Below are positions 1-53,620 of a DNA stretch of 64,000 nucleotides, piece after piece. The position numbers and the translations under genes are program-made. Below the pieces are notes generated by a model, which did not search any database, was not told where the DNA came from, and was given only the letters and a program-made list of their open reading frames with translations. The DNA comes from Blastocystis sp. Blastoise (taxonomy: Eukaryota; Protista; Bigyra: Opalinata), in the NCBI GenBank assembly GCA_039096225.1, contig JBBPEB010000014.1, positions 2,323,978-2,387,977 of the forward strand, given 5' to 3'. The stretch's first letter is position 1, and every line of letters starts with the position of its first letter.

Positions 1-542
1 TAATAGGACATGTTAATCTACAAATACCATCTGAACATAATTGATATGTAGATATAAAACAACTATATGTATTATTATTTGAATATAAAATAGGAATAAA
101 AATAGATAATGTTGTAGAATCATAATGAATATTAATTTGATTTGATTTTTCTTTAGAATAAATAGAATAATCATAATAATGATAAGGTGAATAAATAGAT
201 CTTCCTACTTGTTGTCCTGATGGTGATATAAATATAGAATTACAATCGATATTGATATCTACACAAATACCATTAGGACATCTTTTAGGAGATGTAGTAG
301 GACAAGGAGGAATAGGAGGACAAAGAGAAATATCACGAAAAGACCCATCAGGACATAATGTAATCGAAGAAAAAGGAGAAGGAGAAGGAGAAGGAAGAGA
401 TGAAAATAATGTTATATTTAATGTTTCACAATAAAGAGGAGAAGATACACATAAATCATTATAACAATGATAAGGAAGATTCTCAGGACAATTTGATAGT
501 AATGGACAATCACCTTCATTTAATACACATGTACCTATAAAA

Positions 543-574
<32 letters not shown>

Positions 575-3500
575 CCATCAGGACATTCTACAGGTAAATG
601 TGAAGGACAAAAAGGAAGTCTTTCTGGATCTTGCTAAATATAGATATTATTATTATATTAATAAAATAAAAATAAAAATAAAAATTAATAAAATAAAAAA
701 TAAATAAAAAAACAAATAAAAAAACAACATACATTACAATTTATACACGGTTTACATAAACTATAATGAGCTACACAACTCATATCATCACATAGAAACG
801 GAATATCTTTTGGACAAATAGGTCTTTTTGGACAACTTCTATATATAAAACTAATTTCTTGATCTGTTTCTTTTCCTTGTATTAATGTATAATTTTCTAT
901 AGAATTATAAGGATTATCAGATTGATCTTCATTTATAATATTTAAAGATAATAAAATAGGTGAATATCGCTGACCATGTAAAGGAATACAATCTCCAGAA
1001 GCACATGCTTGAGAATGATATATAGAACATCTATTTAATAATAAACATTGTGAAGGATGAGAAACACATTGACCATTTGGACATATATAAGATTGATTAA
1101 TAGGACAAGAATATGTATTAGAATTTAGAATAGAAGAACATTCATTTCTTGTAGAAACACAAGTACCATTAGAACATAATATAGGATGAAGAGGAGAACA
1201 ACCATTAATAAATGTACATTCATTAGCATTCCTTACACATTCTCCTCGAATACATTTATAAGGTCTTTCATGAGGACAAGAATGATAGGTATATTCAGTT
1301 GTACAATTATAAGAATATTTCACACAACGACCTGTTGGACATTTATAGGGAGATGATAATGGACAACCTATATATATTATTATTATTATTATTATTATTT
1401 ATTTATTTATTAATTAATATATATATGTAATAATAATAAACTTACCATTATCACTAAGACAATCTTCTTCTTTTTCAACACATAATCCATTATATAATCC
1501 TGTTTTACACATATAATTATAAGGAGATGTACATATAGTTCGATCAGTACATAAAGAAGAAGAAGCACGACAACTACCATCAGAACAACGAATATAATTT
1601 GTATTATAATTACTTGTATTACAAGGCATAATCAAAGGACAATCTGTATACGATTTCACACATATACCTATAGCACATCGAATTGGTTTATCTTCACTAC
1701 ATAATGAAGGAAGACTAGAAAAATAAGAATATAAATATTGACGATCTACAAAATAAACTAAAGGAGATTCAAAGAGTTCTGAAGAAAATAAGGATAGTTT
1801 ATTATTAGTATTATTATTTTTGTTAAATAATTTATGTTCATATTCATTTAATAAAGGAGATGATTTCTGAAGATTATTTTCTGTAAAGAAAGATTTATCC
1901 ATATATTTCATAAAAGAATCGATTATTGTATTATATAGAGTATTTATTATAGATTTTATATTATTCATTATTTTATTAAGATAACTATTATTATTTATAT
2001 CTGTATTCAATAATGAATTAACAAATAAAGAAGGAGAAGGAGATGTATCTTCAGGAATAAATGAATAAGAAGAATAAGGACAATAAAAAGTAGATATCAT
2101 ACATAAACCATTCTCACATTGTTTATATGGAGCAACACATAAAGCTAGATAATATTTATTTATTATTATAAATATAAATATTATTATTATTATAAATAAA
2201 ATAATAAAATAAAATATAATAAAATAAAATAAAATAAAATAAAAATAAACAAACATACGACTACATTCTTCATCTTCTTTAATACATTCACCATTATAAC
2301 ATGATTTAGGTTTAGAAGAAGAGCAACCATTCGAAAGAGGACAATCTTCTATAGATTGACGACATGTACCATCTAAACAACGTATATATCCATTAGTATT
2401 ACAAGTCCAATCACACGAAGAATGATAAATATCTATATTATTCTTTGAACTATCTTTTGTATAACATATTAATGTATTATGACACCATCCACTAAATTGA
2501 TCATTATTACAATTATCATTCGATATACATTCTTCTTTTGAAGATACACATAATCCTGAAATACATTTATAAGGTTTAAACATAGGACATAAAGGTTCAG
2601 AACATAAAGAAGAATCACGAACACATGTACCATCAGAACATAAATATTTATCATAACTACAAAAACCAGTCACATAATGATCACTTTCCATTGAATATTT
2701 ATCTAAAAAAAGATATTTATTATATTATAAAAAAATATATATTATTATAAAAAGATATATATATAAAATAAAATAAAATAATAAAATAAAATAAAACAAC
2801 AATAAACACCTACTATAATAACCTTCATATCCATTAATACAATCACTTCGATCTTTAACATACTCTCCATGAATACTACAGAAACTAGTAAATTTAGTAA
2901 CTTGTCTTGCTCCTGTAGTAATACATTTTCCATTAAGACAATTCGAAGGTACATAAGGAGGTATAGGTGGACAATCATCTTCAGAAACATGACATGATTG
3001 ATCCCAACATAATATAGGATTTGTAGTTGGACAATATAATAATGGACATTTCTTTGTTATAAATACACAACTACCATCATTACATAATTTATAATTAATA
3101 GGACAATGAATAGTATTAAGACATTGATTCTGATGATAATGACATAATCCATCACTACATAAAATAGGTTTATTTCTTGGACATATACGATAAGAAGGAC
3201 ATTGTTCACTTTGAGATATACAACTACCCTCTATACATCGTTTACTACCTTTAGGACAAAGAGGAGGAGGAATAGAATTCGATAAGATATTCGATTGAAA
3301 GGATGTATCTGTAGATAATGGATCCCAATAATATTTATTTATAGAAGTTAAAGATCCTTCTATAGAAGCAATAGGATCTCCTGTAGGTATAAAATAGGGA
3401 GATATACTATATATATAATAACTATCATCACTATAATGTATATTATATCTTCTACAAGGATAAAATTGATAATTACGTGAACATAAATGTTGATATCGAT

Positions 3501-6500
3501 CTTTTATTTTATTTATACAATTATTTATATCTTCTTTATTATTATATACATTACATACATCGATATACATTTCTAAATATTTACTAACACATTGTTCTAT
3601 TGTATGTTTTATATTTAAATCTGATTTATCATGATATTCTGTTATATCTAAATATTCTTCATTATATTCTTGTAAAGAATTATAGATATAAGGGAATATA
3701 TTGGTAACACCATAAGTACTATCTTCAATCATATAACAACCTCCATCTTCACATCTCATTTCATTATCTCTACATACAGATATAGTAGGACATAAATAAG
3801 AATGTTCTACACATATTTTTTGATAATCACACATATAGAATCCTAATGGACAATGATAATTAGATTCATCAGTACATAATGAATAAGAAGATACACAATA
3901 ACCAGTATCACATAATATAGGACTCGTAGTAGGACAAATAACAGGACTTGAACATAATAAACTATTTCGTACACATGTTTTACTAGAAGAACAATAATAT
4001 GGATAAGCAGAAGGACAATGAGATGTTAATAATATTGAAGGAGAAGGAATAGTTATATTTGTAGTTGTTTCTAAAGATTTATTTTATTATAGTTTTTATT
4101 ATAGTTTTTATTATATAATATATATATATACTTCCTTGTTGATTTCTTTCAATAAAATGAATTTGTGAATAACAATCTTGACTATTTTCAACACAAGTAC
4201 CATTATCACAAAGAATAGGTTTTTCAAAAGTACATAAGATACTAGGTCTACATTGTTGATAGAATAAAGCACATCCTCCATTAGGACAATTTATATAAGG
4301 AGATCGACAAAGAGGTGTTTGAGAACAATAAAAAGATGAAGGTTTACATGTATTATCAGGACATAATACAAGAGGAGAAGGACATGTAAATTTATTAAAG
4401 AAAATATATAAATATATAAATAAATATATAAATATAAATATATAATAATATTATAAAGGATATGTAACATGTGTTGGACATTCAAGCATAGAAACAACAC
4501 AAGTATTATCATTACATTTATAAAAGTTTTTTGGACAATTTGTATAGATATTAATGATTGTAGATTCATTTAAAGATTTTTCATAAATAATATTATTATA
4601 AGCATCTTTATGATAGAGAGGATAAGGAAATAAAGTAGTTTCTTCATTATTATTATTATTAATAGTTTTAATAGAAGAAATAGTTTGAATATTATTATTA
4701 AGAATAGAAGAAGATGAATATAAATTCATATTTTTTGATCTTGTATTCGGTGCACTTTCAGATAAATTTAAATATAAGAATTTATTATCATATTGATAAT
4801 TATAAGTTTCACCAAAAATAAATATAGAATCCGAAATACATTGATTTGAAGGAGATAAATGATAATATCTTGGACATGTAATTGAAGAAGGACATAAAGT
4901 AGCATTCTTAACACAATATCCTTGAGGACATCGATAAGGATAGGTTAATGGACATGTTGTATATATACATTCAGATATACTATAATTATAATATTTATAA
5001 TATTTATTATTATATATATACTTATGTGTACACATTCCATCAGGACATAAAATAAGTGGTTTAGGACAAAAACGAAGAGAAGGACATTCAATTGGATCAA
5101 TAACACAACTTTTCTATTTATATATTTATTATTAATATAATAAAAAAATTAAAATCATAAAATAAATACTTTATCCCAACATAAAATAGGAGCATAAGAA
5201 GGACATTGAATAGAGTTTTTATATTGATTACATTCTTCTACAGATACTGCACAAGTAACTAGATCTCCACAAGTAATTGTAGAAGGTGGACAATGAACTT
5301 GTTGAGGACACATTTGTTTATTTATAGCTATTGCTCCATCAACACATATTACTTTATTTGTATCATGTATAGGAAAAGAAGGACATCTAAAAATATATTA
5401 TATTATATTAATTATAAAAAATAAAATCAATATATATACTTCATATAATTATCAACACAAGCTCCATTTTCACATATATATCCATGACAAGTACAATTAT
5501 GAATATCTTGTTGACAACCTATATGAATATCTTCAGATTCACGATTCATACAAGCTTCCATTCCTAGAGGACAAGTAAGACTATTATGACAATCATTCCA
5601 ATCAGAAACACAATGAATATCTTGTCCATTATCAAAGAATTCTATAGGATTCTTTATGTAATTACCATTCATATTATTATAACATATATAAGGACTAAGA
5701 GAAGAATGCTGTTTACATAAAGAAGGAAGGAAAACAAGATTTGGTTGAGTACCTAATAATATCTTTGTATAGATTTCTGTATTTGTAAGATCATCCCAAG
5801 TAATATCTGTTAAATAAAAATCTATAGATCCATAACCATATAAAGGAGATAATATAGTTAAACTATGTATATAAGGAGTCTGAGATTTGAAAGGAATAGT
5901 CAATCGAAGCTATATAGAAATATTTATAAATAATAATTATTAAATATATATATAAAATCATACAGATCTTTGTTTTCCACTTGAATCAAGAGTAATAATA
6001 GCAAATAGAGTTTTATTGGATGTATTAATATCTAATAAATTCCCTAATGCATCACGAATCTTAATAATCATAGTCACATCTGTATATAGAGAAGTACTCT
6101 CTGAAATAAATGATATATATGTATTTGTATATTCAGGTTCTAAAGGAGAAAGAGAAGTAAGTTTATTAAGAAATATATAGATATATTTTTATAATTATAT
6201 TATATATAATATAAAGGATATAGATAATGATATTGAAGATATTGATGATTATTAATAATAGGATAATATATATAATCACCAGAATAGATTAATTTATATT
6301 CACAAGTATAGGAATCCTTTATAAATATACAAGGGAATAGTTCAGTATGAAGAATAGGATTTCCATCACCCTCTATATCCAGTGATACATCCATTTCAAT
6401 AGAAATAGAATAGGCATCGAATTCTATTGGACGTTCATATATATCATAAAGATATACATATATAAAACAAGTTGTATTCACACGTTCACATTCATCATTC

Positions 6501-8007
6501 TTAAGGACTATATTTATATTTATATTCATTTATTTATATAATAAGAATACTTGTAGATTGATATCTGATTTGTGCTGGATAGAGTTGAATCTTTAATAAT
6601 GGAAAAGGAGAAGTTGAATTATAATATAATTGAAGTGTATATTCAGTTAGTATATTTATTAAAGAAAATAATTTTTATTTTTTGAATAAATATTTACTTA
6701 TATATAAATAGGATATAATTTCCAGGATGAGTAGAAGTTAAATCATTATAAATTATCAAATATTGACCTATATATAAATATTATTTTATATTATATTATT
6801 ATATATATACCAAGTTCTTTATCATATAATTGAACATTCAAATGAGGTGGAATAAACATTGTATTCGACTATATAGAATACTAATAATACTATATATATT
6901 ATATAATAAATATACAGAAGATGTAATAGCCATAGAGAATAGATTTGTGTCAAAATAGGTATATACAGGATTCCCATATATATCTACAGTAGATAATAAG
7001 AATGATCCTTTTGTCTATTAATATATAATATAATATATAATGTAATATATAAATATATACATTTTCTCTTAATCCATGTATACTACATAATCCATCAGGT
7101 AACTTATCTTCATTCTCTAAGGGAGAACAGGAATATATATAGGAAGTAGCTTCTGATGGTTTTATAATAGCTTGTATTGGAGAATTCTATTTATATATAT
7201 ATAGAATATAATAATATAATAAATATACTAATAAAGCTACTCCTGATAGTTTTACATATATATCATAGTTTCCAATTGTATATAAATATAACGAAAATAC
7301 ATATACATTTCCATAAATTAATATTGCATAACTATATAATAATTATAATAATAATAAATATATATACCTATCTGTTTCTATACGAGTTTCATTCTTATAT
7401 ATTTCTATATATAATTCTTTTGATATATCTTCTTCTATTGTATTATTAAAGGAGTGATTATTAAGAAAATATTTATTTATATAATATATATAAATAATAA
7501 TAATATAAAAGATATATCAAAGAGATGAACATGAATGAAAATTTGAGTACCAGCTATATAAGCTATATATATAAATAATAATGATAATAAATATATATAT
7601 ATACTTTTATTGATTCCTTCATCATCTAATAATTCTATATATATAATAATAATAAAAATACATATAATAAATACCATTTTTTCCATAATCTTCATAATTA
7701 GGAACAGGAATAGGATTATTATTAGAAGGGAAATGAATAAATGATTGTTGAGGGTCCATAATTGATGGAGAAATAATCAATTGAAATTGTTGTTCATAAT
7801 GAACTTGCTCAAGAGAAAATGTTATAGTATATGTATCAGCATCAATATAATACATTCTATATAATAATAATAATAATATAATATATATAATATATACTTT
7901 GTATAAATAGTATTATGATCAAAAATAAAGATAGCTGGTTTATTCCCTGTGCAATAAGGTAAATCACATACATTGAGATTATTACCCTTAGAATCAATCA
8001 CTTTATA

Positions 8008-8039
<32 letters not shown>

Positions 8040-10877
8040 TATATACATGTTGATTTTAAGAATGGTTGAATATAAGTAGGATTAATATCATTACCATAAA
8101 TATCTCGTGGATGAAATGTACAATTAAATTCTATTCCTGTAGTTAATTCATCAGGACAAAGTAAATAAGAAGGAGATCCAAGAAGATCTATATAATTATA
8201 TTATTATTATATATTATATATTATATATATACTCATATTAGGATAAGCATAAGTAGTAGTAGTAAGTATTTCTATATAGGGTTGATCTTCAAAGGATGTA
8301 GAAATAGTAATAGTATATAGATCTCGATAAGAAGAAAGATGAAGAGGAGAATCTATTAGAAACTATATAAATATTAATTATATATATATTATTATATATA
8401 CATGAATATGATTATTGTTGAGAGTATAAGAATAGAGAAGAGGAGGAGAAGAAGTTAAATTGAATTGTTGATTTATAGGAATAGGACTATATAATAATAA
8501 TATTAATAAAAAAAATAAATATACATTTCATTATTATGAATATCTTTAACAATAACATCTAATTCTCTTCTTATTTCAGGTACAAATCCCATACTGAATG
8601 TTCCTGAATAGGTTGATGATAAAGAATACTTTAAACATGTGAATGTAGTAATTGTCACTGATGTATCCAATATAGGCATATTATTATATAATAATATAAA
8701 CGTATAATTACGAGCAGTAGGAAGATGAGGTATAGTTGTATATAGATTAAAGAAAATAATAGTATTTAATTAGTATTATTAATATATATATATAAAAGGA
8801 TATTTATAAGTACCAAGTGATATAGTTTCAACTATATACATAATTCCATCATAATAATCTTCATCTATATTTATCCTATATATATATTTATATTTATATA
8901 ATAATAGAATACCATTTAAGATTAGATTGTTGACCCGTAATAATATGTTGATTTTCATCAAATATTTGAAATGAAAAGAATGGATCAGTTTCTAAATTGA
9001 CATTTAATATCGATGATACATGAAATTTAAGAGGAGATGTTAATCTATAAATATATTGAAAATAATTAAAAAAATATATATACATGAATAAAGAATAAGG
9101 AAGAGAAGATAGAGTAACAGGAATATCTTTAGAGAATAGATTATCTTGTTTATTTTGAAAGAATAGACGTATATATAAATAAGGATATTCTGATTCAGTA
9201 AGACCAATAATAGAAGACATTTCAACAATATAATGAATATGAATACTATAAATAAATATAAATAATAAATAATAAATAATATTAACATACGTATTATTGA
9301 GTATATGTTTATCTACAGTAAAAGGAGTATCTTCTAAAGTATCAGCTCGTCGAATATCTATATCAATATATTCTCCTTCATGATTATATATAGAAAAAGA
9401 AGGATCTTCTTTTGAATATCCACCTTCTTCAATATAATATGTAGCATTCAATGAATTAAAATATTCATCCTATTATAAATATATAACAATAATAATAATA
9501 ATAAATAAATACTTTTAAATTCATATAGATATCTCCACAAATAGAAATATTAGTAGAATCACAATAAGAAACAAATTCAATTCCAGTCCCATGAATATCA
9601 GTATGAGCAATATAAAGAGTACCAGGAACAACAGCTATTATATATATTATATTATAAATATAAATATATATACTTAGATAAGAATCATAGATATTTCCAG
9701 AAACTAATGTAATCAATGAAATCTTATGGAATCCTGATACTTTAGCAGGTATAGAACATGTACTAAGAAGACTTATTGAATCTGGATTCATAACATCATA
9801 ATAAGTATTTCGATCTATATAAAATTATATTCAAATTATATATATTTATATATACCTTCTACATAACTATAATCACATATTTTATATACACTTTGTAAAT
9901 TAATTACTGAATTATTATATCTATAAATAATATATATATAAATAAAGAATAATAAAATAATTACATATCAAAGAATTTGATGTTTATAGGAATAATATCA
10001 CCAGCAGTATAAAGAGAATCATGAGTTACTTTTATTGTAGATGTACTATATATATATAAGAGAATAATAATAATTAATATACATTTCAGTAGAAGGTATA
10101 GTAGTGATATTCAATTCTAAAGAGGACCAAATATTATCTTCAGATAAACAATCTATTTTCACAGTTATATTTCTAACTTTTGAAGGTAAATGAATAAATG
10201 TATAAAGAGGACAAATAGAAGTATATTGATATTCTTGTGTATATATATCAAGAGAAGGAGATGTTGAAAATGAATAAAAAGATTTCTGAGTATACTATAT
10301 AATAATAATATATTATAATATAAATATATAAATATACTTCTCCATCACCTTTAATATACACTTTATATTTATCTCTTCGATTATCTAAACAATATCCATC
10401 ATCATATATATCTCTTGTATATATATACATATACGTTAATGTACCTGCAAAACTAATAGGACTGTAAAAAGTAGAATTAAGAAATATATATAATAGTATT
10501 AAGAGAATATAATATAAAATAAAATAAAATATAAAAAGGATATATAGATTTCAGTTTTCGAGCAATCATTAGGACTAATTCTACTTTGAATAGTACAATA
10601 TATATAAGAATTAATTGTATCAATATCTTCTTCTTCTTCTTGATTTAGAAGACGTACATATAAATGACCATTAGAAATCTCACGAAAGAAGCGAATGGAT
10701 AATGTATATTGTGAAGTAGAATCCATAGTGATTCTATAACTAAAGAATTGATCGGATTCACCTGGAAATAAAGGAATATCAAATCCTTCTGAAGATGTTA
10801 CATATAATTTTATTATAAAATTATTCTGATTCACTAAATTATAATAACGATCTCTTACTATTAATGTAAACTATATA

Positions 10878-10914
<37 letters not shown>

Positions 10915-13900
10915 CAACACTTCTATATAAAGGAATAATTGAATAGATAGTAGAGATAGAAGAGTAGAGATAAGAAGGAACATCACTATATACTGATAAT
11001 TGGAATGGAGTATTAATCACACATAAACCATTCACACTATAGAAAATATTATTATAGATTTATATATATTTACATCCATCTAAAATAAACAGATTCTGAA
11101 GTATAAGAAACAAATTGATATATTAATTTTTCATGTAATGGATCTATATATATATAATAATCATAATAATAAATATATAAAATACCTTCTTTTGAAGTAA
11201 AGAAATAAGATTGATCTGTATTTAATAGAATTGTTCCTGTAAATAATGTTGTAGGAACTGTATTATTATATTCATCACGAAAATATATTTCAAAATTATC
11301 TATATATATATGTTATTATTATATAAATATAAAATAAATATAAATATATACGAATAACACCAACACTAGTAGTTTTATTTGGTGGTATAAAAATAGTATT
11401 TGAAGGAAGAAGAGAACCATGAGTTACTGTCCATGCAGATAAAAATGGAGAATAATGAATAGGAATACCATCTACTGTTATATAAATATCATATATAGCT
11501 ACATAGAAAGCTTTTAAATATAAATAAAGAGAAGAAGAAGAAAGATAGGAGAAGGTATATGTAGGAAGAGATGGAACTATATATATATATATAGAATAAT
11601 AAATAAATAAAATATAAATATACCCTTTCGATCACTAATAAAAGTGACTTTAATTCGTTGTTCGAGATCGATATCTATAGGTATTTGTCCACATCGACTA
11701 TTAAGGAATAATTGAAGTGGATATATAGATCCTGCAGTACTCGTGAAGAAGAGAGGATATTCAGAAGGAGTAATAGTAGTAGAAGTCAAAGGAATCGTTG
11801 ATACTGTAGGAGATATCAATTGGATACCCTATTCAATATAATTATATTATTATTATTAATATATACATGTTCTGGTGAAATAATTTCTAAATAATATCCT
11901 GATGATAAATGAGAGACAGAATCCTATATATATAATAATAATAATGATTATATATAGAATAATACAAGATTGATATTGAGAGTATGTTTATTAGAGAGAT
12001 AGAGATGAAGTTGATTATATCTAGAGATCAACTGTAGAGTTAATTGTCCATTATTATAGAAGGAATAGGATACTGAAGTAATTATAGAAGGAGATTTTAT
12101 TGTAGGAGGAGTATCACCAGGTAAATATACTTGAAGAACTATATATTTATTATTTAATATTATTATATTTATATACTATTTTCATTAAAGAAGAATATAT
12201 AAGAATTAGATTGAGAGAAACATCGAGATTGAAGTATATTATTATAGGGAATATCAGGGTTTATTACAGGAGTAGAAGAAGAATATTGTATATAAGGATG
12301 AAGAAGAATACAAAAAGGAGATATGGATTCTATATATATATAATATAATATATAGTATATATATACCTAAATAGATATTTGATTTAAATTGAAGTATTTC
12401 ATACATATAAATATGATATCCAAATATTGATGTTTTATTAAGAGATACAGTCTAAATATATATATTAATAATAAATATATATATATACTTGTTGTTGAAT
12501 ATGAATATTTTTGAAATCTCTTGTACAATAATAAGGATTTTCTCCTTCACTGTTTAAAGTACTACTATAACTATTTCCAGAGAGATTAATACTACTATTC
12601 ATATTCGGTATAGTTGTAGTATCTTCTTTATCAATAATCATAAAAACTACTTTAGAGAGAAGAGGAGCATCACAGAGAAATGTCAAATTCGTTTGAGTTA
12701 TAAAACGAGATATAGAATCTATAGAATAATATTATTTTATTATTATTATTATGTATACTTGATTGAGTTCCACATGTTCTAGAAGCAAAGAATATAGATA
12801 TAGAATAGGTGATTCCAGGAATAAGACCTAATTTATCTGCATAATTCGTTATATTAATATGAGAACCAACTGGAGTGTTATAACTATATATATAATAATA
12901 TATAATATAATATATAATATAAATACCCTCCATAATCTAAGAATAAATGTTTATTAATAAAAACCCATAATCCATTATTGGTTTCAAAATCTATAAATTG
13001 ATCTGTTCTATTCTCATATCTATATATATAATAATAATATTTTATAAATATAAAACAATAATAATATACAAGAAAAATAAATTTGTTTTCATAGTAAACC
13101 AGCATTTCTTACCAATATATTCTTCTATTGGACTTAATGCATATCCTCCTTTTACATCTGTTAAAGGAAAATAAGTAGGACTAGAAGATATAAAATATTA
13201 TAGATATATATATACTAATTAAGTGTAAGAAGGTTTTTGGTACCCATAATACCAATAAGAGGAAAAGAGAAAGAATATGAATTATTACTTTCTGTAAACC
13301 ATGTATTGAAGGTAGAATATGTAGAATTCATAGATGCACTATAAAAAAGAAGAATAAAAATAGTATTATAAAAATATATATATACACAGGAAGATCATAA
13401 TCATTGAGTTCTGATTCAACGAATCCAGTTTCTTTAGAACTTCCCCATTTCTGAAAGTCAGTATTTCCTTGGGGATCTAAGCAACATAATCGAGAAATCA
13501 CTTCATTATTATGGAAATCATCAGTAATATCCTCTACGAAACAACATCCATCTCCTGCAGCAGTATAATCATAATAGGTACTCATTGTATATATTATAGC
13601 TATAAAAAATTATATTCATTAATTATATATAAATATACGAGAAGTAGCAACAAAAATTCGAATATTATTATCAGCATAATCATTCACTTTATCACATACT
13701 GTTTCTACTCTATCTTCTTTTGAATATAAATTTGAATATATATATCTATATATAATATAATAATACAAAAATAAATAAATATATACTTTGGATAATTTGA
13801 AGGTTGTTTTGTAATAAAATTATCTGTATAATGAATAATACAATCACGAATACCAAATCCTTTCTCATCAACATATAATGCATATACTCTATATATATTA

Positions 13901-14683
13901 ATAATAATTAATAATATATATATATACTTATAAGTGACTGATTTTGTTTGTATTTCAATATATTCACCTCCAGGAAGTGATTGACAAGATTCATAAGGCC
14001 ATTGATTTGTTATGAATTCATTAAATGTAGAATACTTTTGAAAAGTCATTATGAAATATTCATCATCAGACCAACCATTTATATTCAATATTAACAACTT
14101 TAACGAGGTTCCTGGCAATAACGAAATAGGAAGGGAACCTATAAATATATTTCAATTTATATTTATTTTAATAGATAAATGTGATGATAAGAATCATAAA
14201 TTTCATATTTTTAGAAATAAATAAATTATAAAAATCATACCAATTACGTCGTAATCTCTGAATGAATTATTCTCTATGTTCTTAAAGCCTGTAGGATTCG
14301 ATATATGTTCTATATAACTTCGTTTATCTGTTATAAAGTCATTATTGGAATTCGAATAAAACATTTCCCACATTTGACCTTGAAAATGATAACAATAAGT
14401 CTAAATAAATTTATAAATGATTCTAGAATTCTATTTATGTATCATTACATACAAGATAAACTTCATTACGATCTTTTCCTATCCAAACATACTCAGAATC
14501 AAAATAATAATCACCTCCTTGTTTTATCATACAATCTTGTACAGGCAATTCTCTTGATTTACCTATTCAATTATGTGGAATATTATGGAATTAAGAGAAT
14601 AGAAAAAACAAACCTAATTTCTTTCCAGAATTAACTGCTAAACATGTAGTATAGATGAATAAGAGTAGATATAATATTCTCAT
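1..14683 (-). CDS. Giant multi-exon secreted/surface protein: signal peptide, PA14/fibro-slime-like domain, filamin/Ig-like repeats, then many Cys-rich (CPxxxPxxCxDGxC) repeats; 3' end runs off the window
   Basis: ATG at 14683 gives MRILYLLLFIYTTCLA (signal peptide-like). Exons join in frame wherever checked. Motifs YFPLTD, FETNNGLWVFINKHLFLDYG and SIFFASRTCGTQS (12.7-13.2 kb) resemble fibro-slime/PA14. D-x-[FY]-[GN]-N repeats at 6-11.8 kb resemble filamin/Ig-like folds. Cys repeats occupy <5.9 kb. About 53 GT-AG and 6 AT-AC introns by manual count. Confidence 0.85.
4386..4463 (-). other. U12-type (minor) AT-AC intron, 78 nt, phase 2
   Basis: 5' ATATCCTTT ... TTTTCTTTAAT AAATTTAC 3'. Removal joins CAT GTT AC|A TGT CCT TCT CCT (HVTCPSP), restoring a Cys repeat. 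Confidence 0.92.
6157..6221 (-). other. U12-type AT-AC intron, 65 nt, phase 2
   Basis: ATATCCTTT ... TTTCTTAAT AAACTTAC. Joins TAT CT|T TCT CTT TCT CCT TTA GAA CCT (YLSLSPLEP) in an open frame; the nearer AC gives a stop. Confidence 0.9.
6650..6716 (-). other. U12-type AT-AC intron, 67 nt, phase 1
   Basis: ATATCCTAT ... TTTTCTTTAAT AAATATAC. Joins CCT GGA AAT T|TA ACT GAA TAT (PGNLTEY). Confidence 0.9.
7454..7515 (-). other. U12-type AT-AC intron with variant donor, 62 nt, phase 0
   Basis: ATATCTTTT ... TTTTCTTAAT AATCAC. Joins CTC TTT GAT|TCC TTT AAT AAT (LFDSFNN), completing a filamin-like D-x-F-x-N motif. Confidence 0.85.
8738..8803 (-). other. U12-type AT-AC intron, 66 nt, phase 2
   Basis: ATATCCTTT ... 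TTTTCTTTAAT CTATATAC. Joins GGT ACT TAT AA|A ACT ATA CCT CAT (GTYKTIPH). Confidence 0.92.
10464..10543 (-). other. U12-type AT-AC intron, 80 nt, phase 0
   Basis: ATATCCTTT ... TTTCTTAAT TCTACTTTTTAC. Joins GAA ATC TAT|AGT CCT ATT AGT TTT GCA GGT (EIYSPISFAG), in frame with ORF 10248-10430; the nearer AC gives a stop. Confidence 0.88.
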
Positions 14684-21328: not shown

Positions 21329-22641
21329 TTTTTTTCATTAATTACGTTTTTTATTTATATTTATTATATATATATATATTAATTATTATGAACTTTTTTA
21401 AACATTATATTTAAATGGTATATTTTTATATTATTGATGAAATACTATTAATATGGTCTTGCTTATATTATATAATACTTATATATACTCACAATTCCAA
21501 AGAGATCTTTTTATAAGTGTAAATTATCAAATCAATTATTTTTCTATTCATTATCCATTGTTTTATGTAAAAGTATAAATTAAATATTTTATTAATATTA
21601 TCATAAACACTTAATAATGAAATATAAACACATAGATAGGCGTGAAACTTTAAAAATATATATATAATATCATAATTGTTTTTTTATTTTATATATTTAG
21701 TTGAATGTATAAGTTTCTAAACATCATATAGTAGGCTTTTAAATATAGATAATAAATGTGAACAAAATGGTTATTATTAGTATGTATTTAGAGTCAAAAT
21801 TATGGTTTTATATATATTTTTTAATTCTTGATTGTATTGAAACATTAGAAATAATATATACAAAAGTAATTTGTAATAATCAAATTATTCTATTGCTTTT
21901 AAGACAGCTGTCTTGACAATAACTGAATGATACTTTCACATAAACTATACTTGACTTTATATAAACCAAAATACAAAATTAAGATTTCAAAAATACACAT
22001 TTGATCACCAATCTCAGTGAAAATTGTCACACAGCAATTCCATCAACTGATTTAAGAAGTAACTGGAAATAATTGGAATGATTATAAAAGGAAGTAAGGC
22101 AATCATAATATAGATAGGTGATTCACACGAATAATAATTGTTTAAAGAATAATAAATATCAATTGAAGCTCAAATAGATCATATGAAGAAGACTTGACAC
22201 AAAATGCTAATAAAAAAAGATATTTAAAAAGGATTCATGAAGATTATTAATATTCAGAATACTTAAATTAATCATAAATATAGAACAGACTTACTACTAT
22301 AGCTAACGAAAAAAAGAATGACAATGAGTTGTTTATTGTAATCTGTTTTAATGCTATTTTTGTAAATCACACAATTTATAAATATTATGATTTAATAATC
22401 TTATTAAAAATATAAATTAAATGAATAATAAAGATATTTAATGAATGAATTAAAAAGTTGATTAAAATCATGATTTATTTTAAAATGAAAGCTATAAAAT
22501 GAAAATAATTATATAATGTTAAAATAAAAGTGTTTAAAAATATTTACGATTATTATTAAATTTTGAGTTATAAAAGAAAATAGTTTCATAATTTAATTAA
22601 AAGAAGCTTTCATATTTATTTTATTTCTTTTATTGTTTAGA

Positions 22642-24179
22642 ATGGTGAAAGAGAATGTAGGATTTGATGCTGATAAGATTGGTGATATTCAGAAGGATGT
22701 AATTCATTTTGAAAGACTGATTGGTGATTTGATTGGTATTTTAAGTAAGTCAATAAGTTTTTGTGTTCATTCAGGTGAGTCAGTGAATGAATTAGTGAAT
22801 CGATTAACAAGAAATTGTGATGGAATGAATGATAAGAATGGTGTTGATCCACATATAATTATCCAAGAATCTTCATATGTTCATGAAAGTGATTTAAATA
22901 TGAATAAAAATGATAATGGAATTGATTTTATTCGATTTACGAATGCAGGTCCAGTTTATTCTCTTCCTAAAAGAATAACAAATAGTTTAGTAGGTAGTTT
23001 TATTTATGAAGCTTCTCAAGAAGATCAAAGAGCTAATGATGGTACTATATTTATTGATTATCATGGTGATGAAACAGTTGCTCCTTTATTAATTGATTCT
23101 TTAATGAATAAGAAAGTGAATATTGATAAATTAAGTTTTGATGATCAAATTGATTTATTAAGAATGTTTGATTACTGTAGTTTACCAATTCCTAAAGAAT
23201 TTGTAAAATATTCATATAGATTTAGAAAGAATCATATTATGAAACACTATGAAGAAGGTGATGATGTTATTCTTTATATAAATGATAAGAAAGATGATAT
23301 ACTAAGAGATTATTTAAAGAAGAATGGATTATGGAATAATATAGTAAATGAATATAGTGATGGATATGTAGATTATGATGAAAAGAATAATGAAATGTAT
23401 ATGAATATGAATTATACATATATTGATCATATTGATGAATATATTCAATATAATTATATTTATATATCTGAAGAAGAAACAAAAAATATAAATAGAGAAT
23501 TATTAGAGAATGAAATGTATAGTTTATTTGGTGATACAGGAAAAGAAAAGGTAAAAGAAGGAATGATGATTCCTCAATATTTTGTTGGCACAAAAATAAT
23601 AATGAATTATTCAGTGGAAATACATTTAGTGAATTGGCTTGGTAAAGAAAAGAAATGGAAATTATTATTTAGAGCAAGTGAACATGATTACTTAGCAAGT
23701 GAATTTCATAGATATTGTGATAATAAAAGAGAAACAGTAACTATAATCAAACATACAGGTCATAATAATAACATTAATATATTTGGAGGATATACAGATC
23801 AAAATTGGGATAGTTCAAGTTGTATATTTATTTTATTTAATCATTCAATATGATTTATATAGGTTGGAAACCTTATTCTAAAGAATTTCTATTTATATTT
23901 AGCAATGAACATAATATTCCTCCTACTAAATATGAATATATAAATAATGATAAAAAATATGGTATATACTGTTATTCTTCTAATGGTCCATCATTTGGAA
24001 ATGGCCATGATATCTATATATCTGATCAATGTCATAGTAATACCGATTCTTATTGTTCTGCATCTTCTTATTCTGAAGTGAATACTCCTCAAAAATCATC
24101 ATTATTTGTAAATACTAATAGTGATAATTTTACGAATAAATTTACAGTAGAAGATTATGAAGTCTGGGGAAGAGCATAA
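22642..24179 (+). CDS. Family B paralog 1: BTB-like plus C-terminal TLDc domain protein (one intron, 23822-23862)
   Basis: TLDc motifs WKLLFRASEH, FHRYCDNK.ETVTII, IFGGYT, FLF, GPSFG.G.DIYI and VEDYEVW. A 41-nt GT-AG intron joins ORFs 22633-23853 and 23850-24179 (SSS C|WKPY). Confidence 0.9.
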
Positions 24180-24774: not shown

Positions 24775-27700
24775 TTATAATGTAACATTTTTTTCAACTT
24801 TAACAGTTTCAACTTCTATTTTTTTGTGAGGTTTTAATTTCTTTTCTTTCTTTTCTTTCTTTATATTTTTTAGAACAAATATTAATATCAAAAGTATAAC
24901 AAGAATGACAATAACAACAATAAGAATAATTGTTGTAATTGAAAGAGAATTACCTGTTGATACTATTTTTCCATTAATTGAAGTATTAGTAATATTTTGA
25001 AGATTAGAATCATTACTTGTTTTACATGCTTTAAGAAGAATAGAATCAATACCAGTAAATAGTGTATTTATATCATTCTTTATATTATCTTCATCAGCTT
25101 GATTAGCAGTTATTCTTACATTAACTGAAACACCATCAGTATAAGTAGATATACTAGAAACACTAATAATCTTTACAGCAGATGAAGGAATAGAATAACT
25201 AGTAAGTGATTGAACAATAAGTGTTCTAAATGTTTCAGTAGTAGAAGGAGTATTAAAAGCAGCTTCAGTTAATCCTTCAAGTTTTATAGGAATAGCAATA
25301 AATACTTTATTATCACCTGGATTTTCGCTGGCAGCAAATACATAACATTCAGAACTATCAGCAATTTGCCAAGAAGCAGTACCAACACCTGTATTTTGAC
25401 AAACACGACTTTGAATACCTAATTGACCAGAAGGACATTCAATATAAGCAGTTATATCTCTTTCTGTAATAGGCCAATTATCATCAGAAGGACAATAAAT
25501 AATACTTATCGTAATAGTAATAGTAGCAGTAGATTCTCCTCTAGCATTAGAAGCAGTAATAGTATAACTATTAGAAGAAGCTGAAGTAGGAATACCATAT
25601 ATAAAGCCATTTTGAGTATTAAATATTAATCCATCAGGAAGAGAAGGAGATATAGTTAAAGGATTAAGATTACCACCTGTAATAGAAGCCATAATTGGAG
25701 TAATAATATCATTCTTATAGCCAGTAATAGTATTTGTATTATAAGAAATGGTAGGATTCTTTAATTCACAATTATTAATAATAGTATCCCAAACAGCAGG
25801 ATATTCAAGTTTACATAATCTAGTTCTAAATCCTTCATAATTAATAGGATCTTCACAAGGTAATGTAATTTGGTTACCAATTTCAGTCATAGACCAACCA
25901 TTTTCAGCAACACAAGAAATAATACTTATCGTAATAGTAATACTAGCAGTAGATTCTCCTCTTGAATTAGAAATAGTAATAGTATAACTATTAGAAGAAT
26001 CAGAAGTAGGAATACCATAAATTAATCCAGTAGTAGGATTAAATGATAATCCATCAGGAAGAGAAGGATTAATAGTTAAAGGATTCAAATTACCTCCTGT
26101 AATAGAAGCTATAATAGGAGTAATACCAATATTTTTATATCCAGTAATAGTAGTAGTTATATAAGAAATTGTAGGATTCTTTAGTTGACAATTATTAACA
26201 GCATCTTCCCAAACAGCAGGATTTCCTAATAAACATAATCTTGTTCTAAATCCTTCATAATTAATAGGATCTTCACATGGTAAAGTAACTTGCTCTCCAG
26301 CTTCTGTAACAGGCCATATATCATCCATTATACAATTATAAATATTAATAATAATATTAATAACAGCATTATCTTCTCCTCTTGGATTTGATACAGTAAT
26401 AACATAAGAACCAGAAGAAGAAGAAGTAGGTGTACCATATATTTGACCATTTTCAGTATTAAATACTAATCCATCAGGAAGAGAAGGATTAATAGTAATA
26501 GAATTCAAATTACCACCAGTAATAGTAGCATTAACAGAATTAATAGCAATATTTTTATAACCAGTAATAGTTGTTATATCATATATAATTGAAGGCATTT
26601 TTAGTTGACAATTATTAATAATATCTCCCCAAACAGCAGGATATTCAAGTTTACATAATCTTGTTCTAAATCCTTCATAATTCATAGTATCTTCACAAGG
26701 TAAAGTAATTTGTTGACCAGCTTCTATAGATGGCCATATATCTTCCAAAGGACAATTAGTTGTGTTTATAGTAATAATAATACTTGTAGTAGTTTCTCCT
26801 TTTTGATTAGAAATAGTTACGGTATAAGAACCAGAAGAAGAAGCAGTAGGTGTACCATATATTAATCCAGTAATAGAATTAAATGATAAACCATCAGGAA
26901 GAGAAGGAGATATAGTTAAAGGATTCAAATTACTTCCAGTTATAAGAGCAGTAATAGGAGTAATAGGAATATTTTTATATCCAATAGTTGTAGGTACTGT
27001 ATATATTATACTTGGCATTCTTAATTGACAATTATTAACAACAGAATCCCAAACAGCAGGATAACCAAGTTGACAAGATCTTGTTCTTGATCCTTCATAA
27101 TTAATAGGATCTTCACAAGGTAATGAAGCTTCTTGACCAATTTCAGTAAGAGGCCAATTATCTTCAGAAGTACATAAAACTAATTCTATAAAAATCATGA
27201 TAGTAGTAGAAACAGAACCAGCAGTATTCATAGCAGTGATAGTATATGTAGTAATATCAGAATTTGTAGTAGGTGTACCAGAAATAACACCATTAATTTG
27301 ATTAATAGTAAGACCATTAGGAAGAGCTGGATCAATAGTATATGTCAATTCAGCACCAACTATATCAGGAGAAAGTGATACAGGTATATTTTTATGATAA
27401 ATAAAAGGAGAACCAGTATAAGAAAGATCAGTAGGAGCGACTACAGTACAAAACTGTTGAATTTCACCAAATATACCACCAGTACATAGTCTTCTTTGAA
27501 TACCAGTATATTCGATAGAACATTTTTGAAATGAATAACTTCCTTCAATAGCAGGCCCCCAAATACCATCAGCTACACAAGAAACAACCTTATTATTAAT
27601 GTATAAACCAAATTCAGATAATTGAAAATAGGTATCACCACACAGAAGAGTATCAAGATCAGAATTATCACATTCAGTAGTGATAAATCGATAAGAATTA

Positions 27701-30700
27701 TAAGGTTGAAAAGAATAGAAATCATAAGAGAATGTTTTTCTGTGTAAATTAAAAAATTGTTGGTGTTGAAAGTCTAATAATATCCAAGTAGCACCATTAT
27801 CATTAGAACCTTCAATTCTCCAACTAGAAGGAGATCTCCGATTACAATATTCACCATTAGTAACCTTATAATGATTGATAAATTCTTTACGACCATTATT
27901 GAAAGTATATTGATAAATAGCACCAACGCATCGTGGACCACTAACAACTGAAGTATCTATTTTATTATCAAATAACATATCAGTACCTTCATCGCCAGTC
28001 TTTTCAATATCAGACCAAGCAACACCATCAGATACTCTGTATTCACCAGAAGCAATAAAAGAAACAACACTTGTGAAATTATTGGTAGTAGAAAGAGTAT
28101 CTTTCTTATGAATCTCAATAGCTATAACATTAGTACCAACAACAAGAATAGGATTAATAAGTGTAGAAACAGAACTAATAAATACAGTACTAGAAGTATA
28201 TTCAGCAGTAGCAGTAGTATTATAATTAACAAAACCAGTAGGCATATTAATTCTTCTGATTTCATTACCATTAAGATAAACAATCATACCAGCATAAGTA
28301 CTAGCACTAATATCAATTCCAGCAAAATCAGGATTAATAGTAGAAAGAGTGAAAGTAGTTCTATAATATTGAGTATTACCAGTAGGAACAGGTAAAGATC
28401 CAGAAATACCAGAAGTCCAAGCAACATCAGAGAAAGAATCAAGATTCCAACCAGAAGGAACCTCACTATCAGAATCCAAGTATTTCCAAGTATTAGAACT
28501 AGAAATAATTCTACCGATGCTTAGAATAACTGTCTTAGGAGATACACGTTTAGTAACAGTACCAGAAACGAGAGGAGTTGTATCATCTTCAATATAAACA
28601 GAATAAGCACTAGCACCAAAATTGTCATTCTTTATATCAGACATAACTAAAGAATAAACACCAGTAACTTTACAATAGACGAAATCTTGTGTAGAATAAT
28701 CAACACTAGTAGATCTTGAATCAACAACTACACCAGTAGAGTCTTTAAGAATCCAAGAAACTTTATTAGCATTAGTTTTATAATCGAAAGATAATTTGAA
28801 TAGGTTATTAGGGAAATTACAAGTAAGTACAGAGATAGTAATTGTAGCAGTTACAGGAGTACCTTGAATACTCTTAGCAGTAATAGTATATACAATAGGA
28901 GATTGGAGTTGAGTAGGAATACCGTTTAAGTAGCCATTGGAAGAATCCATAGTAATACCAGTAGGAGGAAGAGGAGTAATACTAAAATCATAATAATATT
29001 CAGAAGAAACTAAAAGATCAGGAATTATAGCATCCTTATAAGCAACAAGATTAGAAGGAGTGAAACTAAAATCAGGAATAACAAGAGAATTAATATCTTC
29101 AATTAAAAATTCCCATTCAGAGAAAGCATATTTATTATTCTCTTCAATAACAACAGCTTTAGTAACAGCAATCTTATAATTAGTATAAGCTTTAGTAGAA
29201 CCAAGAGCATAGAAACATTTTTTTTGTTGTCTTTCTTTCCAAGAATTATTAGTTTGAGAAGTAATAGAAGTCCAAGTAATACCATCCATAGAACCATAAA
29301 TAGTCCAATCTGCAGGATCATGACTAGGAGCATCTCTGTTGGAATAAATACAATATTTATTCATATAAATAGCTCTCTTATTATTAAATTGAACGGAAAC
29401 CCATTTTTCACTTACAGAATCATGAATAGGAGTAATCCAACGAGTATAAGGATTAGAATCAAAAAGATTAGCAGGATCACCATCTGTAAACACACCACTA
29501 GAAGCATAATAGCCATCAGAAGCATTTTGAATGACATTAGAATCGCCAAGAAGATGGAATATACCATCGAAATCAAGTTTATAAGAACCAGTACCAGAAT
29601 TAACAAGAGCAATAGCTATAGTAACACTATTGTCATTAGAAAGAGTAGTCATAGGACCCGATACTGATCTCCATAAGAAAGAAGAATCACCATCAGTAGC
29701 AACAGTAGTTGTAGTAATTTCACCAGCAGCAATATTATATCTATAGACTTCATTACCATTTACATAAATAACACAGCCAGCTTTAGATTTAAAGAATAAT
29801 TCCCAACCAACCATATTCGTCTTAGAAATAATAGTAAAAGTACTTCTAAGAAGAATAATACTTTGAGTAACAGAAACAAGAGGATTATAGTAAAGTTGAG
29901 ACCAAGATACATCAGAGAAAAGAGCAGTCTTCCAATTAGCATCAGTAGGAGCACCTTGTTGATATCTCCAAGCAGATTGAGGAGCAAGATCAAGACGAGT
30001 ATTAACATAATAAGTAGTAGTAGTACCAGTTAATAAATACAAGCGAGCAATTCTATGTTCAGTAGTAAGATCATATTTTATAGAAACATCAAGATAAGCA
30101 CCTTTTTCCCAGCCATCATTATTATCATCGAAAAGAACAAATTTCCAACGACCAGCAGGTTGACATTCATTTAATAATTGATTAGCACCATTATTAACAC
30201 CAGTAACAGTAATAATTTGAGTATTATCTTCAGTATAAATAACAACACGTTCATCTTTAGAAGTCGATTTATTCACTTTAGTAATAACTACTTGAGCCAT
30301 AGAAGGTTGTTGACAAACAATAACACTAATAGTCATAGTAAAAGAAGTAGCAGCATTAGTAGCACCATCAATAGCACTAATGGTATAAGTTTTAGTGGGT
30401 GAAGTTGTAGTTACAGAACCATATATAATACCATTATTAGAATTAAAATTTAATTCAGTAGGTAAAGCAGGAGTAATAGTATATGTATGAATACCACTCG
30501 AAATAGGAGCAATAGATATAGATGGATCATTAGTATGAATATTAAGAGTATGAGAAGGATATTGAAGACCAGGAGTAACAAGAGGTTGATTTGTAACAAA
30601 AGTACGAATTTCAGATAATTGAGTAATACTTTCACCATTATTAGATAATATATCCAATTTAATTCTATTATAAGATTTTCTATTAGAAGGAATATTAAAT

Positions 30701-50349: not shown

Positions 50350-52129
50350 TTTTACTTTTTTTGCTGTTTTTTAATATTTATATTGTTCTAATTAATTCTC
50401 TATTTCTTTTCATATTTCTCAGAAAGTATTCATAACGTTTCTACTCATTATATTGTATATATTTTTGTTTCATTTTAAAGTTGTAATGATTAAATACATT
50501 TGAAATATAGAAGCAAATGATTAAAACGATTTAGGTTTGAATATGATTTTTATACTTATTAGGAATCTATTGTTATATTCTAAATACTCCTCTTTATTAG
50601 TATTATTTCTATCAATATAGATCTATTTCAATGATATATAAAGTATAAGTAGATATCATTTTTTTATTAAAGTAGACTGTATTATATTTTTCAAATGATA
50701 GAGAATACAGAAAAGATTTTTACTTTATTAGTCCTATTTTTATTAATATACTAAAAAAATAATAAGATTCTTTTTTAAATAATTTATAACTTGATTAAAA
50801 TAGTGTTATATAAGATGCTTGTTTAATTATTTAATAAGAATTTTCAAAAAATAATTATATGTAATATATAATACATTGCTTATTGAATTATATATTTATG
50901 CTATGATAAATAAGGTTTATAAATTATTGAATTATATGTATATAAACAGAAATATCAATGAATATATGTTTTATTTAATAATTATATGCGTTGACAACAA
51001 CTATTTATGAATCAAATGAAGTTTTATATGGGTAGTGATTTTATCTTAAATACATCATAATTTATTAAATAACTTTAAATATATGTAGATTATTAGTTGA
51101 AAACTGTAAAATAAATATAATCGATATTATTCTTATTAATTGATATATTACATTTATTAACATATCAAAAATATTGAAAACTATATATACATTTATATTA
51201 GCATTAATATCTTTTTGAATTTGCTATCAAAAATAGTTGTTACTCATCATATTTATAGATAATATATTATGAATAATAATAATAAATTACATGGGATATC
51301 ATGATAAATTATTGTATAAAAATTAGAGGACAATATGGTGTGAAATAGAAGTGGTACTAATAATAATAAATAGTAGAGAGAAATGATGGAAAGAGGAGAT
51401 ATAACTGCGTCAGAAGACAATAGAAAATATTTTTGATTAATCTATATATATATGTTGCAAATATATTTTATTAAATAAAAGAAACTTGTTAATTATAATT
51501 AGAAAAAGAGAACGATTATAAGAAAAACATAACAATAACATTTTAGAATAGTCATAATTATCAAAGCCAAGTATATATATTATACATAAATATAAGTAAA
51601 ACATATTTTCAGATAAAATAAGAGGATTACAGAAGAAATTGCAAATCAAACAAGTTATCAAAAATGAATAAGAATACTGTAATATTATACTAGTGTTGCA
51701 TATGTTTTATCAGTATTCAATTCATTGTTTAAATACTAAATGATGTGAAGATTTAGTAATGAACAGTCCATTCTAACAAATTTATAGCATTCTTATATGA
51801 AATATAATAATTCACAATTATTTGAAATACTTCTTATACTTATAAATGCAAAATAAGTGACTAATAAGGAAAGAAAATTAATTGAAAAATAAACACGGGA
51901 AATTATTTTCCAAAAAAAAATTAAACGAGACAACAAATACTTTGGGAGTGACTGAAAGAAATCCACGACAAAAAACCTACCCTACAAAATTAATATTGTT
52001 CGCCTTGAAGAGGGAGAAACACATTTAAAAGTAGATACTTGTATTTCAAAAGAGTTTCTTTAAAAGAGACTAAGCTTTTGAATTAGGGATACTGCTTTGT
52101 TCTTCAAATATTCATATTTCATAAATCAA

Positions 52130-53620
52130 ATGGTGAAAGAGAGTGTAGAATTTGATACTGATAAGATAGGTGATATTCAGAAGGATGTAATTCATTTTGA
52201 AAGACTGATTGGTGATTTGATTGGTATTTTAAGTAAGTCAATAAGTTTCTGTATTCATTCAAGTGAATCTATAAATGAATTAGTAAAGCAATCCGTAAGA
52301 AATTGTGAAGGAATGAATGATAAGAATGGTGATGATCCAAGTATAATTATCCAAGAATCTTCATATATTCATGAATGTGATACTACTATGAATAATAATG
52401 ATAATGGAATTGATTATATTCGGTTTACAAGTAATGGTCCAGTTTATTCTCTTCCTAAAAGAATAACAAATAGTTTAGTAGGTAGTTTCATTTATGAAGC
52501 TTCTCAAGAAGATCAGAGAAGTATTGATGGTACTATATTTTTTGATTATCATGGTGATGAAACACTTTTTCCTTTATTAATTGATTCTTTAATGAATAAG
52601 AAAGTGAATATTGATAAATTGGAATTAGGTGATCAACTTGATTTATTAAGAATGTTTGATTATTGTAATTTACCTATGCCTGAAGAATTTGTAAAATATC
52701 CATATAGATTTAGAAATAATCATGTAGTGAAACAATATAAAGAAAGTGATGATATTATTCTATATATAAATGATAATAAAGATGATACATTAAGAGATTA
52801 TTGGAAGAATAATGGATTATGGAATAAGATTGCTAGTGAATATGATGATGGATATGTAGATTATGATGAGAAGAATAATGAAATGTTTATGAAGATAAAT
52901 TTTGAATATATTGATTATATTTATGAATATATAAAGACTTATCATATTTACATTTCTGAAGAAGAAACAAAGACTATAAATAAAGAATTATTAGAGAATG
53001 AAATGTATAATTTATTTGGTGATAAAGGAAAAGAAAAGGTAAAAGAAGGAATGGAACAAGGATGGTTTAAAGGAAGTAATATTATTTTTAATAAAGTATT
53101 AGACACTTCATTAGTGAATTGGCTTGGTAAAGAAAAGAAATGGAAATTATTATTTAGAGCAAGTGAACATGATTATTCTGCAAGTGAATTTCATAGATAT
53201 TGTGATAATAAAGGAGAAACAGTAACTATAATTGAACATATTGGCCATAATGATCATATTAATATATTTGGAGGATATACAAATCAAAGTTGGGCTGATT
53301 CAGGCTATAAATTCTATTCTAAAGGATTTCTCTTTACATTAACTAATGAACATGGTATTCCTCCTACTAAATATGATTATATAAATAGTGATAGAAGTAA
53401 AGCTATATATTGTTATTCTTCTTATGGTCCCATATTTGGAGGTGGTTATGACATCAAGATATCTGATCAATGTTATAGTAATACTGATTCTTATTGTAAT
53501 GCGCATTCTTATTCTGAAGTAAGTACTCCTCAAAAACATTCATTATTTGTGAATACTAATAATGCTAATTCTAATAATAGTTTTACAGTAGAAGATTATG
53601 AAGTCTGGGGAAGAGCATAA
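52130..53620 (+). CDS. Family B paralog 2: BTB-like plus TLDc protein, no coding intron
   Basis: Uninterrupted ORF with all TLDc motifs, ending VEDYEVWGRA*. Confidence 0.92.
   Translation: MVKESVEFDTDKIGDIQKDVIHFERLIGDLIGILSKSISFCIHSSESINELVKQSVRNCEGMNDKNGDDPSIIIQESSYIHECDTTMNNNDNGIDYIRFTSNGPVYSLPKRITNSLVGSFIYEASQEDQRSIDGTIFFDYHGDETLFPLLIDSLMNKKVNIDKLELGDQLDLLRMFDYCNLPMPEEFVKYPYRFRNNHVVKQYKESDDIILYINDNKDDTLRDYWKNNGLWNKIASEYDDGYVDYDEKNNEMFMKINFEYIDYIYEYIKTYHIYISEEETKTINKELLENEMYNLFGDKGKEKVKEGMEQGWFKGSNIIFNKVLDTSLVNWLGKEKKWKLLFRASEHDYSASEFHRYCDNKGETVTIIEHIGHNDHINIFGGYTNQSWADSGYKFYSKGFLFTLTNEHGIPPTKYDYINSDRSKAIYCYSSYGPIFGGGYDIKISDQCYSNTDSYCNAHSYSEVSTPQKHSLFVNTNNANSNNSFTVEDYEVWGRA

Follow-up and report, generated by a model that had tools for sequence, protein, structure and literature searches.

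The host gene and its six AT-AC introns

The window analysed here is the whole stretch of 64,000 nucleotides (nt) taken from contig JBBPEB010000014.1 (positions 2,323,978 to 2,387,977) of the assembly GCA_039096225.1 of Blastocystis sp. Blastoise, a tortoise isolate; this assembly amounts to 33.34 Mb in 34 contigs, the window itself having 22% G+C. Its first part (1..14683, minus strand) is occupied by a gene that extends beyond the window start and that is predicted to encode a type I membrane protein of about 5,100 amino acids (aa), and six introns of this gene begin with AT, end with AC and carry the sequence motifs of U12-type introns. When modelled from the ATG at 14683, the gene contains 59 introns within the window, 53 of them GT-AG and six AT-AC, and 3,898 codons uninterrupted by any stop. 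Followed past the window start, the full gene reaches 63-64 introns, and no further AT-AC intron was found in that outer part. The initial annotation, which had been made from the letters alone, set the six at about 10% of some 59 introns; the count of 59 holds within the window, while the share over the whole gene is about 9.5%.

The predicted protein has a signal peptide, Cys-rich repeats, a hydrophobic segment near aa 4180 (one likely transmembrane helix) and a long low-complexity tail. Searches were run exon by exon or with the NCBI proteins, the joined spliced model being used in pairwise alignments to genomic loci. Two exons (12760..13018, minus strand) give weak matches to the fibro-slime domain, covering the consecutive TIGR02148 positions 18-43 and 46-77 under the curated cut-off. 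The approximate immunoglobulin (Ig)-like region (5910..11830, minus strand), which contains five of the six AT-AC introns, resembles filamin/GEX2 arrays by language-model features (0.94) and model structure, the fold having been tested for about 8740-5950 only (residues 1-560 of the NCBI protein P0006) and the upstream part being assigned from a recurring motif. The Cys-rich repeat region (1..5600, minus strand) contains the remaining AT-AC intron. An Ig-like array, weak fibro-slime matches and a single membrane anchor bring the protein close to the filamin/GEX2-type and fibro-slime proteins; unlike these, it has no Pfam family above threshold, and its domain combination and length fit no named family. 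A role as surface adhesin or receptor would be the likeliest one. In the same gene, the donor of the major intron 55 (2703-2813, minus strand) is probably at 2813 rather than at 2807, where four of six paralogs have no GT.

The six AT-AC introns lie on the minus strand between 10543 and 4386. In the order of transcription, these are intron 22 (10543-10464, 80 nt, phase 0, branch motif at 10483-10476), intron 32 (8803-8738, 66 nt, phase 2, branch motif at 8754-8746), which has an alternative in-frame AC 3 nt further on, intron 40 (7515-7454, 62 nt, phase 0, branch motif at 7467-7460), intron 46 (6716-6650, 67 nt, phase 1, branch motif at 6666-6658), intron 48 (6221-6157, 65 nt, phase 2, branch motif at 6172-6165) and intron 53 (4463-4386, 78 nt, phase 2, branch motif at 4402-4394), the last one within a Cys-rich repeat. 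The 5' site reads ATATCCT in five of them and ATATCTT in intron 40, i.e. a U12-type, RTATCCTT-like site, and the 3' part always holds TTCTT(T)AAT, whose end lies 6-12 nt before the 3' end. A strict pattern built on these elements gives five matches in the window against 0.15 expected (at most one in any of 100 order-4 Markov simulations), the sixth intron, which begins ATATCCTA, standing outside it. With 62-80 nt, compared to a median of 42 nt for the neighbouring major introns, all six are longer than any major intron in the gene's central part, where the maximum is 61 nt (p=4e-5). Besides, retention of any one of them leads to a stop within 4-14 codons. The six U12-type introns, with their 5' site, branch motif, AC end and frame-restoring excision as initially described, are thereby all recovered.

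Taken together, these features indicate that the six segments are genuine U12-type AT-AC introns, of the kind already described in Blastocystis, and splicing at the six junctions can be deduced from the genomic sequence with high confidence. At the level of transcripts, 27% of the words of the stretch were found in one polyA RNA run. That all six go back to the copying of a single repeat unit can be rejected, since they fall in three phases and in unrelated contexts. A tandem duplication as the source of intron 53 was also considered and has little in its favour, the direct repeat at its junctions being absent from the other five introns and not being kept upstream in the related gene of a pig lineage described below.

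Annotation, paralogs and a pig-lineage homolog

The initial annotation expected GT-AG predictors to fragment this gene, which is what the public models do. The NCBI model of this copy begins after intron 32, bridges across introns 40, 46 and 48 with the loss of 22, 50 and 25 residues, respectively, and ends by reading into intron 53, and intron 46 marks the beginning or the end of further NCBI fragments. As to the statement that no GT-AG alternative could be found, it goes too far: in-frame GT/GC-AG bridges do exist, each deleting codons (at least 13-54). Nevertheless, the residues deleted by such bridges are kept in the pig-lineage homolog, for which reason the AT-AC reading is preferred, and the spliced alignment to this homolog scores 4044 with the AT-AC introns and 3809 without them. 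The public models for this genome hence split or truncate a multicopy surface protein of 5,100 aa at its AT-AC introns, which skews both gene counts and surface-protein catalogues.

The multicopy nature of the host gene gives a second view of these introns. The exon at 5442-5909 is present in seven copies, and parts of the gene are found at no fewer than 15 loci, namely at least seven long copies, with an identity of about 94-96%, and at least eight partial ones, on contigs C13, C14, C16, C17, C20, C23, C26, C30 and C31. Several long copies sit close to contig ends; in one partial group, the four alignments examined have their ends at 11831 and 6620 in common, and another three end near 8254. 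In all 53 readable paralog copies of the introns, the AT-AC ends and the branch motif are kept (11/11 for intron 22, 13/13 for intron 32, 11/11 for intron 40, and 6/6 for each of introns 46, 48 and 53), and the 5' site is unchanged except for one C-to-T at position +6. By contrast, the intron length has changed by a number that is not a multiple of three in 33 of these 53 copies, whereas the paralogous exons show no frameshift in 472 comparisons, no stops and a ratio of nonsynonymous to synonymous differences (pN/pS) of 0.25. Preserved AT-AC ends, free intron lengths and a maintained exon frame are what would be expected if splicing uses these boundaries. According to our own count from the pattern lists and the paralog reading, the copies of the host gene together account for about 60 AT-AC introns, gene duplication having multiplied them to that number.

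Intron 22 has received two independent insertions, in two paralogs. In the first (L012:2331-4300), about 1.9 kb are inserted between the branch site and the AC, with an open reading frame resembling tyrosine recombinases (PF00589, E-value 3e-5, under the cut-off), and splicing of that copy may be blocked. In the second (L024:6724-9595), about 2.9 kb without long open reading frames lie upstream of the branch site, and another copy of this insert is present near the same locus.

Outside the genome, a search of 1.8 billion proteins with the exons returned a single relative besides the gene's own family, together with one weak match to a bacterial IPT/TIG protein (P0003), which is unrelated. A Cys-rich gene on a JGI contig (L035) was also tried as ortholog and rejected, its score of 740 comparing with 523-703 for block-permuted queries. 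The relative comes from gut metagenome contigs, one of which is named as pig gut, with 37-39% G+C and major introns of 30-39 nt, and it is more than 99% identical among samples. This pig-gut relative is most likely another Blastocystis, subtype 5 (ST5) being the usual one of pigs (PMC7400023).

Spliced alignment to this homolog gives 35% identity over 2,704 residues, and both genes have a major intron at no fewer than 42 of 47 positions. The homolog also has AT-AC introns, of 50-62 nt, at the exact codon and phase of introns 22, 32, 40, 46 and 53, eight further contigs agree on these shared positions, and coincidence of five AT-AC positions among the 47 shared ones has a probability of about 6.5e-7. 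At the position of intron 48 (6221-6157), no intron is found in the homolog, the homologous exon being continuous. Because the codon and phase are the same in a homolog of only 35% identity, five of the introns predate the deep split between the tortoise lineage, to which the present gene belongs, and the pig lineage, intron 48 having been gained or lost afterwards. The idea of a recent or lineage-specific expansion, as first put forward, does not hold for these five shared positions.

Minor spliceosome components and genome-wide counts

Searches for the minor small nuclear RNAs (snRNAs), which had been suggested along with the introns, retrieved all four of them, U4atac as a candidate only. 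The genome search places U11 (62.9 bits) and U6atac (63.8 bits) above the Rfam cut-off. U12 is of full length, with 46.8 bits (cut-off 53), an E-value of 2e-7 and an intact canonical branch-binding sequence, GUAAGGAAA. The U4atac candidate is a weak match (29.7 bits) whose pairing with the U6atac of the genome, at -35.9 kcal/mol, was reached by 0 of 500 shuffles. In terms of proteins, the zf-U11-48K domain has three matches in the genome, a domain which occurs in other proteins too.

The branch site of the introns, TTTCTT(T)AAT, has drifted from the canonical TTCCTTAAC and pairs with the U12 of the genome at -4.6 to -6.9 kcal/mol by way of G.U wobbles, a pattern in keeping with A+T drift on the side of the introns and not with a U12 that co-evolved. 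In U6atac (L004:1501-1617, minus strand; G000:C21:544821-544937), GCCGAGAGA is found where the consensus has AAGGAGAGA, the rest of the molecule being well conserved. The box concerned base-pairs to the 5' splice site; its alteration, as read in one gene copy, may explain the presence of either C or T at +6. As for U11 (L006:1501-1629, minus strand), it starts with AUAAAGGG and not with AAAAAGGG, which lengthens the pairing to 5' sites reading ATATCCTTTAT; this variant may be due to chance in an A+T-rich genome.

That minor introns exist in Blastocystis, as the initial annotation mentioned, is published: in subtype 1 (ST1), 346 of 35,412 introns, in 319 genes, are U12-type (PMC5608401), while intronIC gives 253 minor introns for ST1, of which 77% are AT-AC and 49% in phase 0, recent gain being offered, from the phase distribution, as one explanation (PMC10639083). 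The minor introns with their prevailing AT-AC type, as well as the idea of their gain, are thus on record for the genus. What is new here is that a single gene holds six, that five of the positions were kept over a deep split, that one position varies between lineages, and that the introns were multiplied by duplication and led to mis-annotation. Six of 63 introns is about tenfold over the ST1 background of 0.98% (p=3.7e-5), and six per gene is twice the human and mouse maximum of three (PMC6717393).

Throughout the genome, two branch-site patterns give 87 matches against 31 in the control and 109 against 62, respectively, i.e. an excess of about 100 for these two variants, roughly half of which comes from copies of the host gene. 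The pattern of the U12 GT-AG subtype is found 7 times (3 in the control). A third branch-site pattern (319 matches against 321) is swamped by a coding repeat family. In this context, a high-copy repeat starting ATATCCTCCAAAT (e.g. G000:C3:1025778-1025854), which seems to be coding on the opposite strand, resembles the minor 5' site and adds spurious matches to the pattern counts. The genome thereby looks like one with an ST1-level density of minor introns to which gene duplication has been added, with hundreds at most by pattern counts, and not like one of Physarum scale.

AT-AC introns are also found in ordinary eukaryotic genes, such as Vps15-like and AAA ATPase genes. Further ones that restore the frame interrupt a UxaA-like dehydratase gene (L036:1674-1794, minus strand, 121 nt) and a GH127-like glycosidase gene (L049:1472-1543, plus strand, 72 nt), both hosts being of bacterial-type families. 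These two would support intron gain only on condition that their host genes are of lateral origin. One more gene (L043:1505-2363, plus strand) has two AT-AC introns, of 81 and 67 nt, within 0.9 kb.

Elsewhere in the window, an intronless open frame of 1,960 aa (24775-30657, minus strand) with He_PIG Ig repeats and an F5/8 type C domain is unusual in such an intron-dense genome, and three open frames of 400-500 aa with a TLDc domain are located at 22633-23853 (plus strand), 52097-53620 (plus strand) and 56678-58183 (minus strand).

Origin of the introns and comparison with known systems

The explanation that we consider likely as a whole is that these are U12-type introns of de novo stem origin, at five positions fixed before the tortoise/pig split and multiplied later by duplication. 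The organism's own minor spliceosome would remove them: U11 would pair with the ATATCYTT 5' site, U12 with the AT-drifted branch site TTTCTT(T)AAT, G.U wobbles taking the place of the G-C pairs of TTCCTTAAC, and U6atac would take over after recognition by U11 and U12. The greater length of these introns may reflect the fact that the minor machinery probably needs more room. At least five positions were fixed before the tortoise/pig split and the sixth was gained or lost later, the subsequent duplication to at least 15 loci then raising the number of AT-AC introns to about 60. In terms of function, the default assumption is that the introns accumulated neutrally in a gene that is very long and rich in introns, any regulatory role being putative.

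Creation of these positions de novo, in the Blastocystis stem or in near ancestors, appears rather more plausible than the other origins discussed below, as judged from the unrelated positions and phases, the repeat-built nature of the surface protein and the lack of any ortholog found elsewhere. The de novo gain initially proposed would therewith stand, although shifted back in time to the stem or earlier. Several observations weigh against this explanation: the U12 and U4atac scores are under the Rfam gathering thresholds, the 5'-splice-site box of U6atac is altered, and no ortholog was found beyond the two lineages, which leaves the gain unpolarised, a blank search being weak evidence for so divergent a protein.

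This last point bears directly on the first alternative, according to which the introns are ancient and were inherited with an old eukaryotic surface-protein gene of filamin/GEX2-like type. Minor introns are indeed mostly old (PMC10639083, PMC2426677), Ig arrays of the filamin/GEX2 type are present in other protists, and the positions are stable over a deep split. Such inheritance is nevertheless unlikely in view of the missing outside ortholog, of a number per gene above the human and mouse maximum, and of the report by Larue and Roy of few conserved minor introns in ST1, with a phase pattern like that of the major introns. The AT-AC introns of the bacterial-type genes point the same way, the transfer of these families being putative.

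It is more doubtful still that older major GT-AG introns were converted to U12 AT-AC introns in the Blastocystis stem. In favour of it are the very high intron density of the gene, the inference made for some introns that they turned from major into minor ones (PMC11347168) and the resemblance of the local major donor GTATAT to ATATCC. Conversion requires, however, a coordinated change at both ends and at the branch site. Moreover, neither the paralogs nor the homolog show an intermediate or GT-AG version at any of these positions, U12 introns of the GT-AG subtype hardly occur in the genome, and position 48 has no intron at all in the homolog.

A recent burst of de novo AT-AC introns in the tortoise lineage, comparable to the Physarum expansion, would account for six such introns within 6.2 kb, all AT-AC, for the absence of intron 48 from the pig-lineage homolog and for the AT-AC introns in other genes of the genome. 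It is very improbable, being largely refuted for the five introns whose positions are shared at 35% protein identity; the pattern excess is also modest and owed in good part to the host-gene copies, no terminal-repeat or target-site signature common to the six was seen when the junctions of 11 introns were read by eye, and ST1 already has its 346 (PMC5608401). Finally, the view that the segments are not spliced as AT-AC introns at all, the region holding several shorter genes, being bridged by GT-AG introns as in the NCBI models or being handled by the major spliceosome, can appeal to models that end at or bridge these introns and to the formal in-frame bridges, but is hardly credible given the homologous residues that the bridges remove, the lower spliced score, the retention of the two ends and of the branch motif by every paralog and by the second lineage, and the presence of minor snRNAs.

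Starting again from de novo creation in the stem, one might tentatively go further and regard Blastocystis as the second eukaryotic lineage, following Physarum, in which minor introns arise de novo at a rate that can be measured, almost only of the AT-AC type. This gene would then have gained five introns in the stem and the one at 6221-6157 after the split, the introns of bacterial-type genes would date further gains, and the change in the U6atac box may have made the demands on the 5' site less strict. Whether minor introns continue to arise is an open question; a survey of more than 3,000 genomes saw very little sign of this beyond Physarum and singled out Blastocystis as a possible exception in need of comparative work (PMC10639083). 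In this respect, the host gene offers six alignable positions, one of them lineage-variable, and about 15 paralogous copies, with which gain and loss can be polarised by means of existing genomes and RNA-seq.

The closest known systems include Blastocystis ST1 and ST7 (PMC5608401; PMC10639083), whose minor introns are likewise AT-AC-dominated and short, yet longer than the major ones, with minor snRNAs present. What sets the present gene apart is the grouping of six introns, of 62-80 nt, with an AT-drifted branch site, five of them at positions that were kept across a deep split, and all of them multiplied by duplication and missed by the public models of this tortoise isolate. Human and mouse also show clusters of minor introns within single genes (PMC6717393), but the maximum of three is attained by 3 genes and about 72% of the introns are GT-AG, compared to six here, all AT-AC, in a surface-protein gene. 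Finally, Physarum polycephalum (10.1101/2020.10.12.336362) shares with this genome the occurrence of minor introns in young genes, a drifted branch site and the discarding of non-GT-AG introns by annotation pipelines. The Physarum introns, however, were gained en masse, are mostly GT-AG and come with a U12 whose branch-binding site has co-evolved and with a transposon signature that has been proposed, whereas those described here would number hundreds at most, are all AT-AC, and are accompanied by a canonical U12 branch-binding site, with no shared transposon signature seen.

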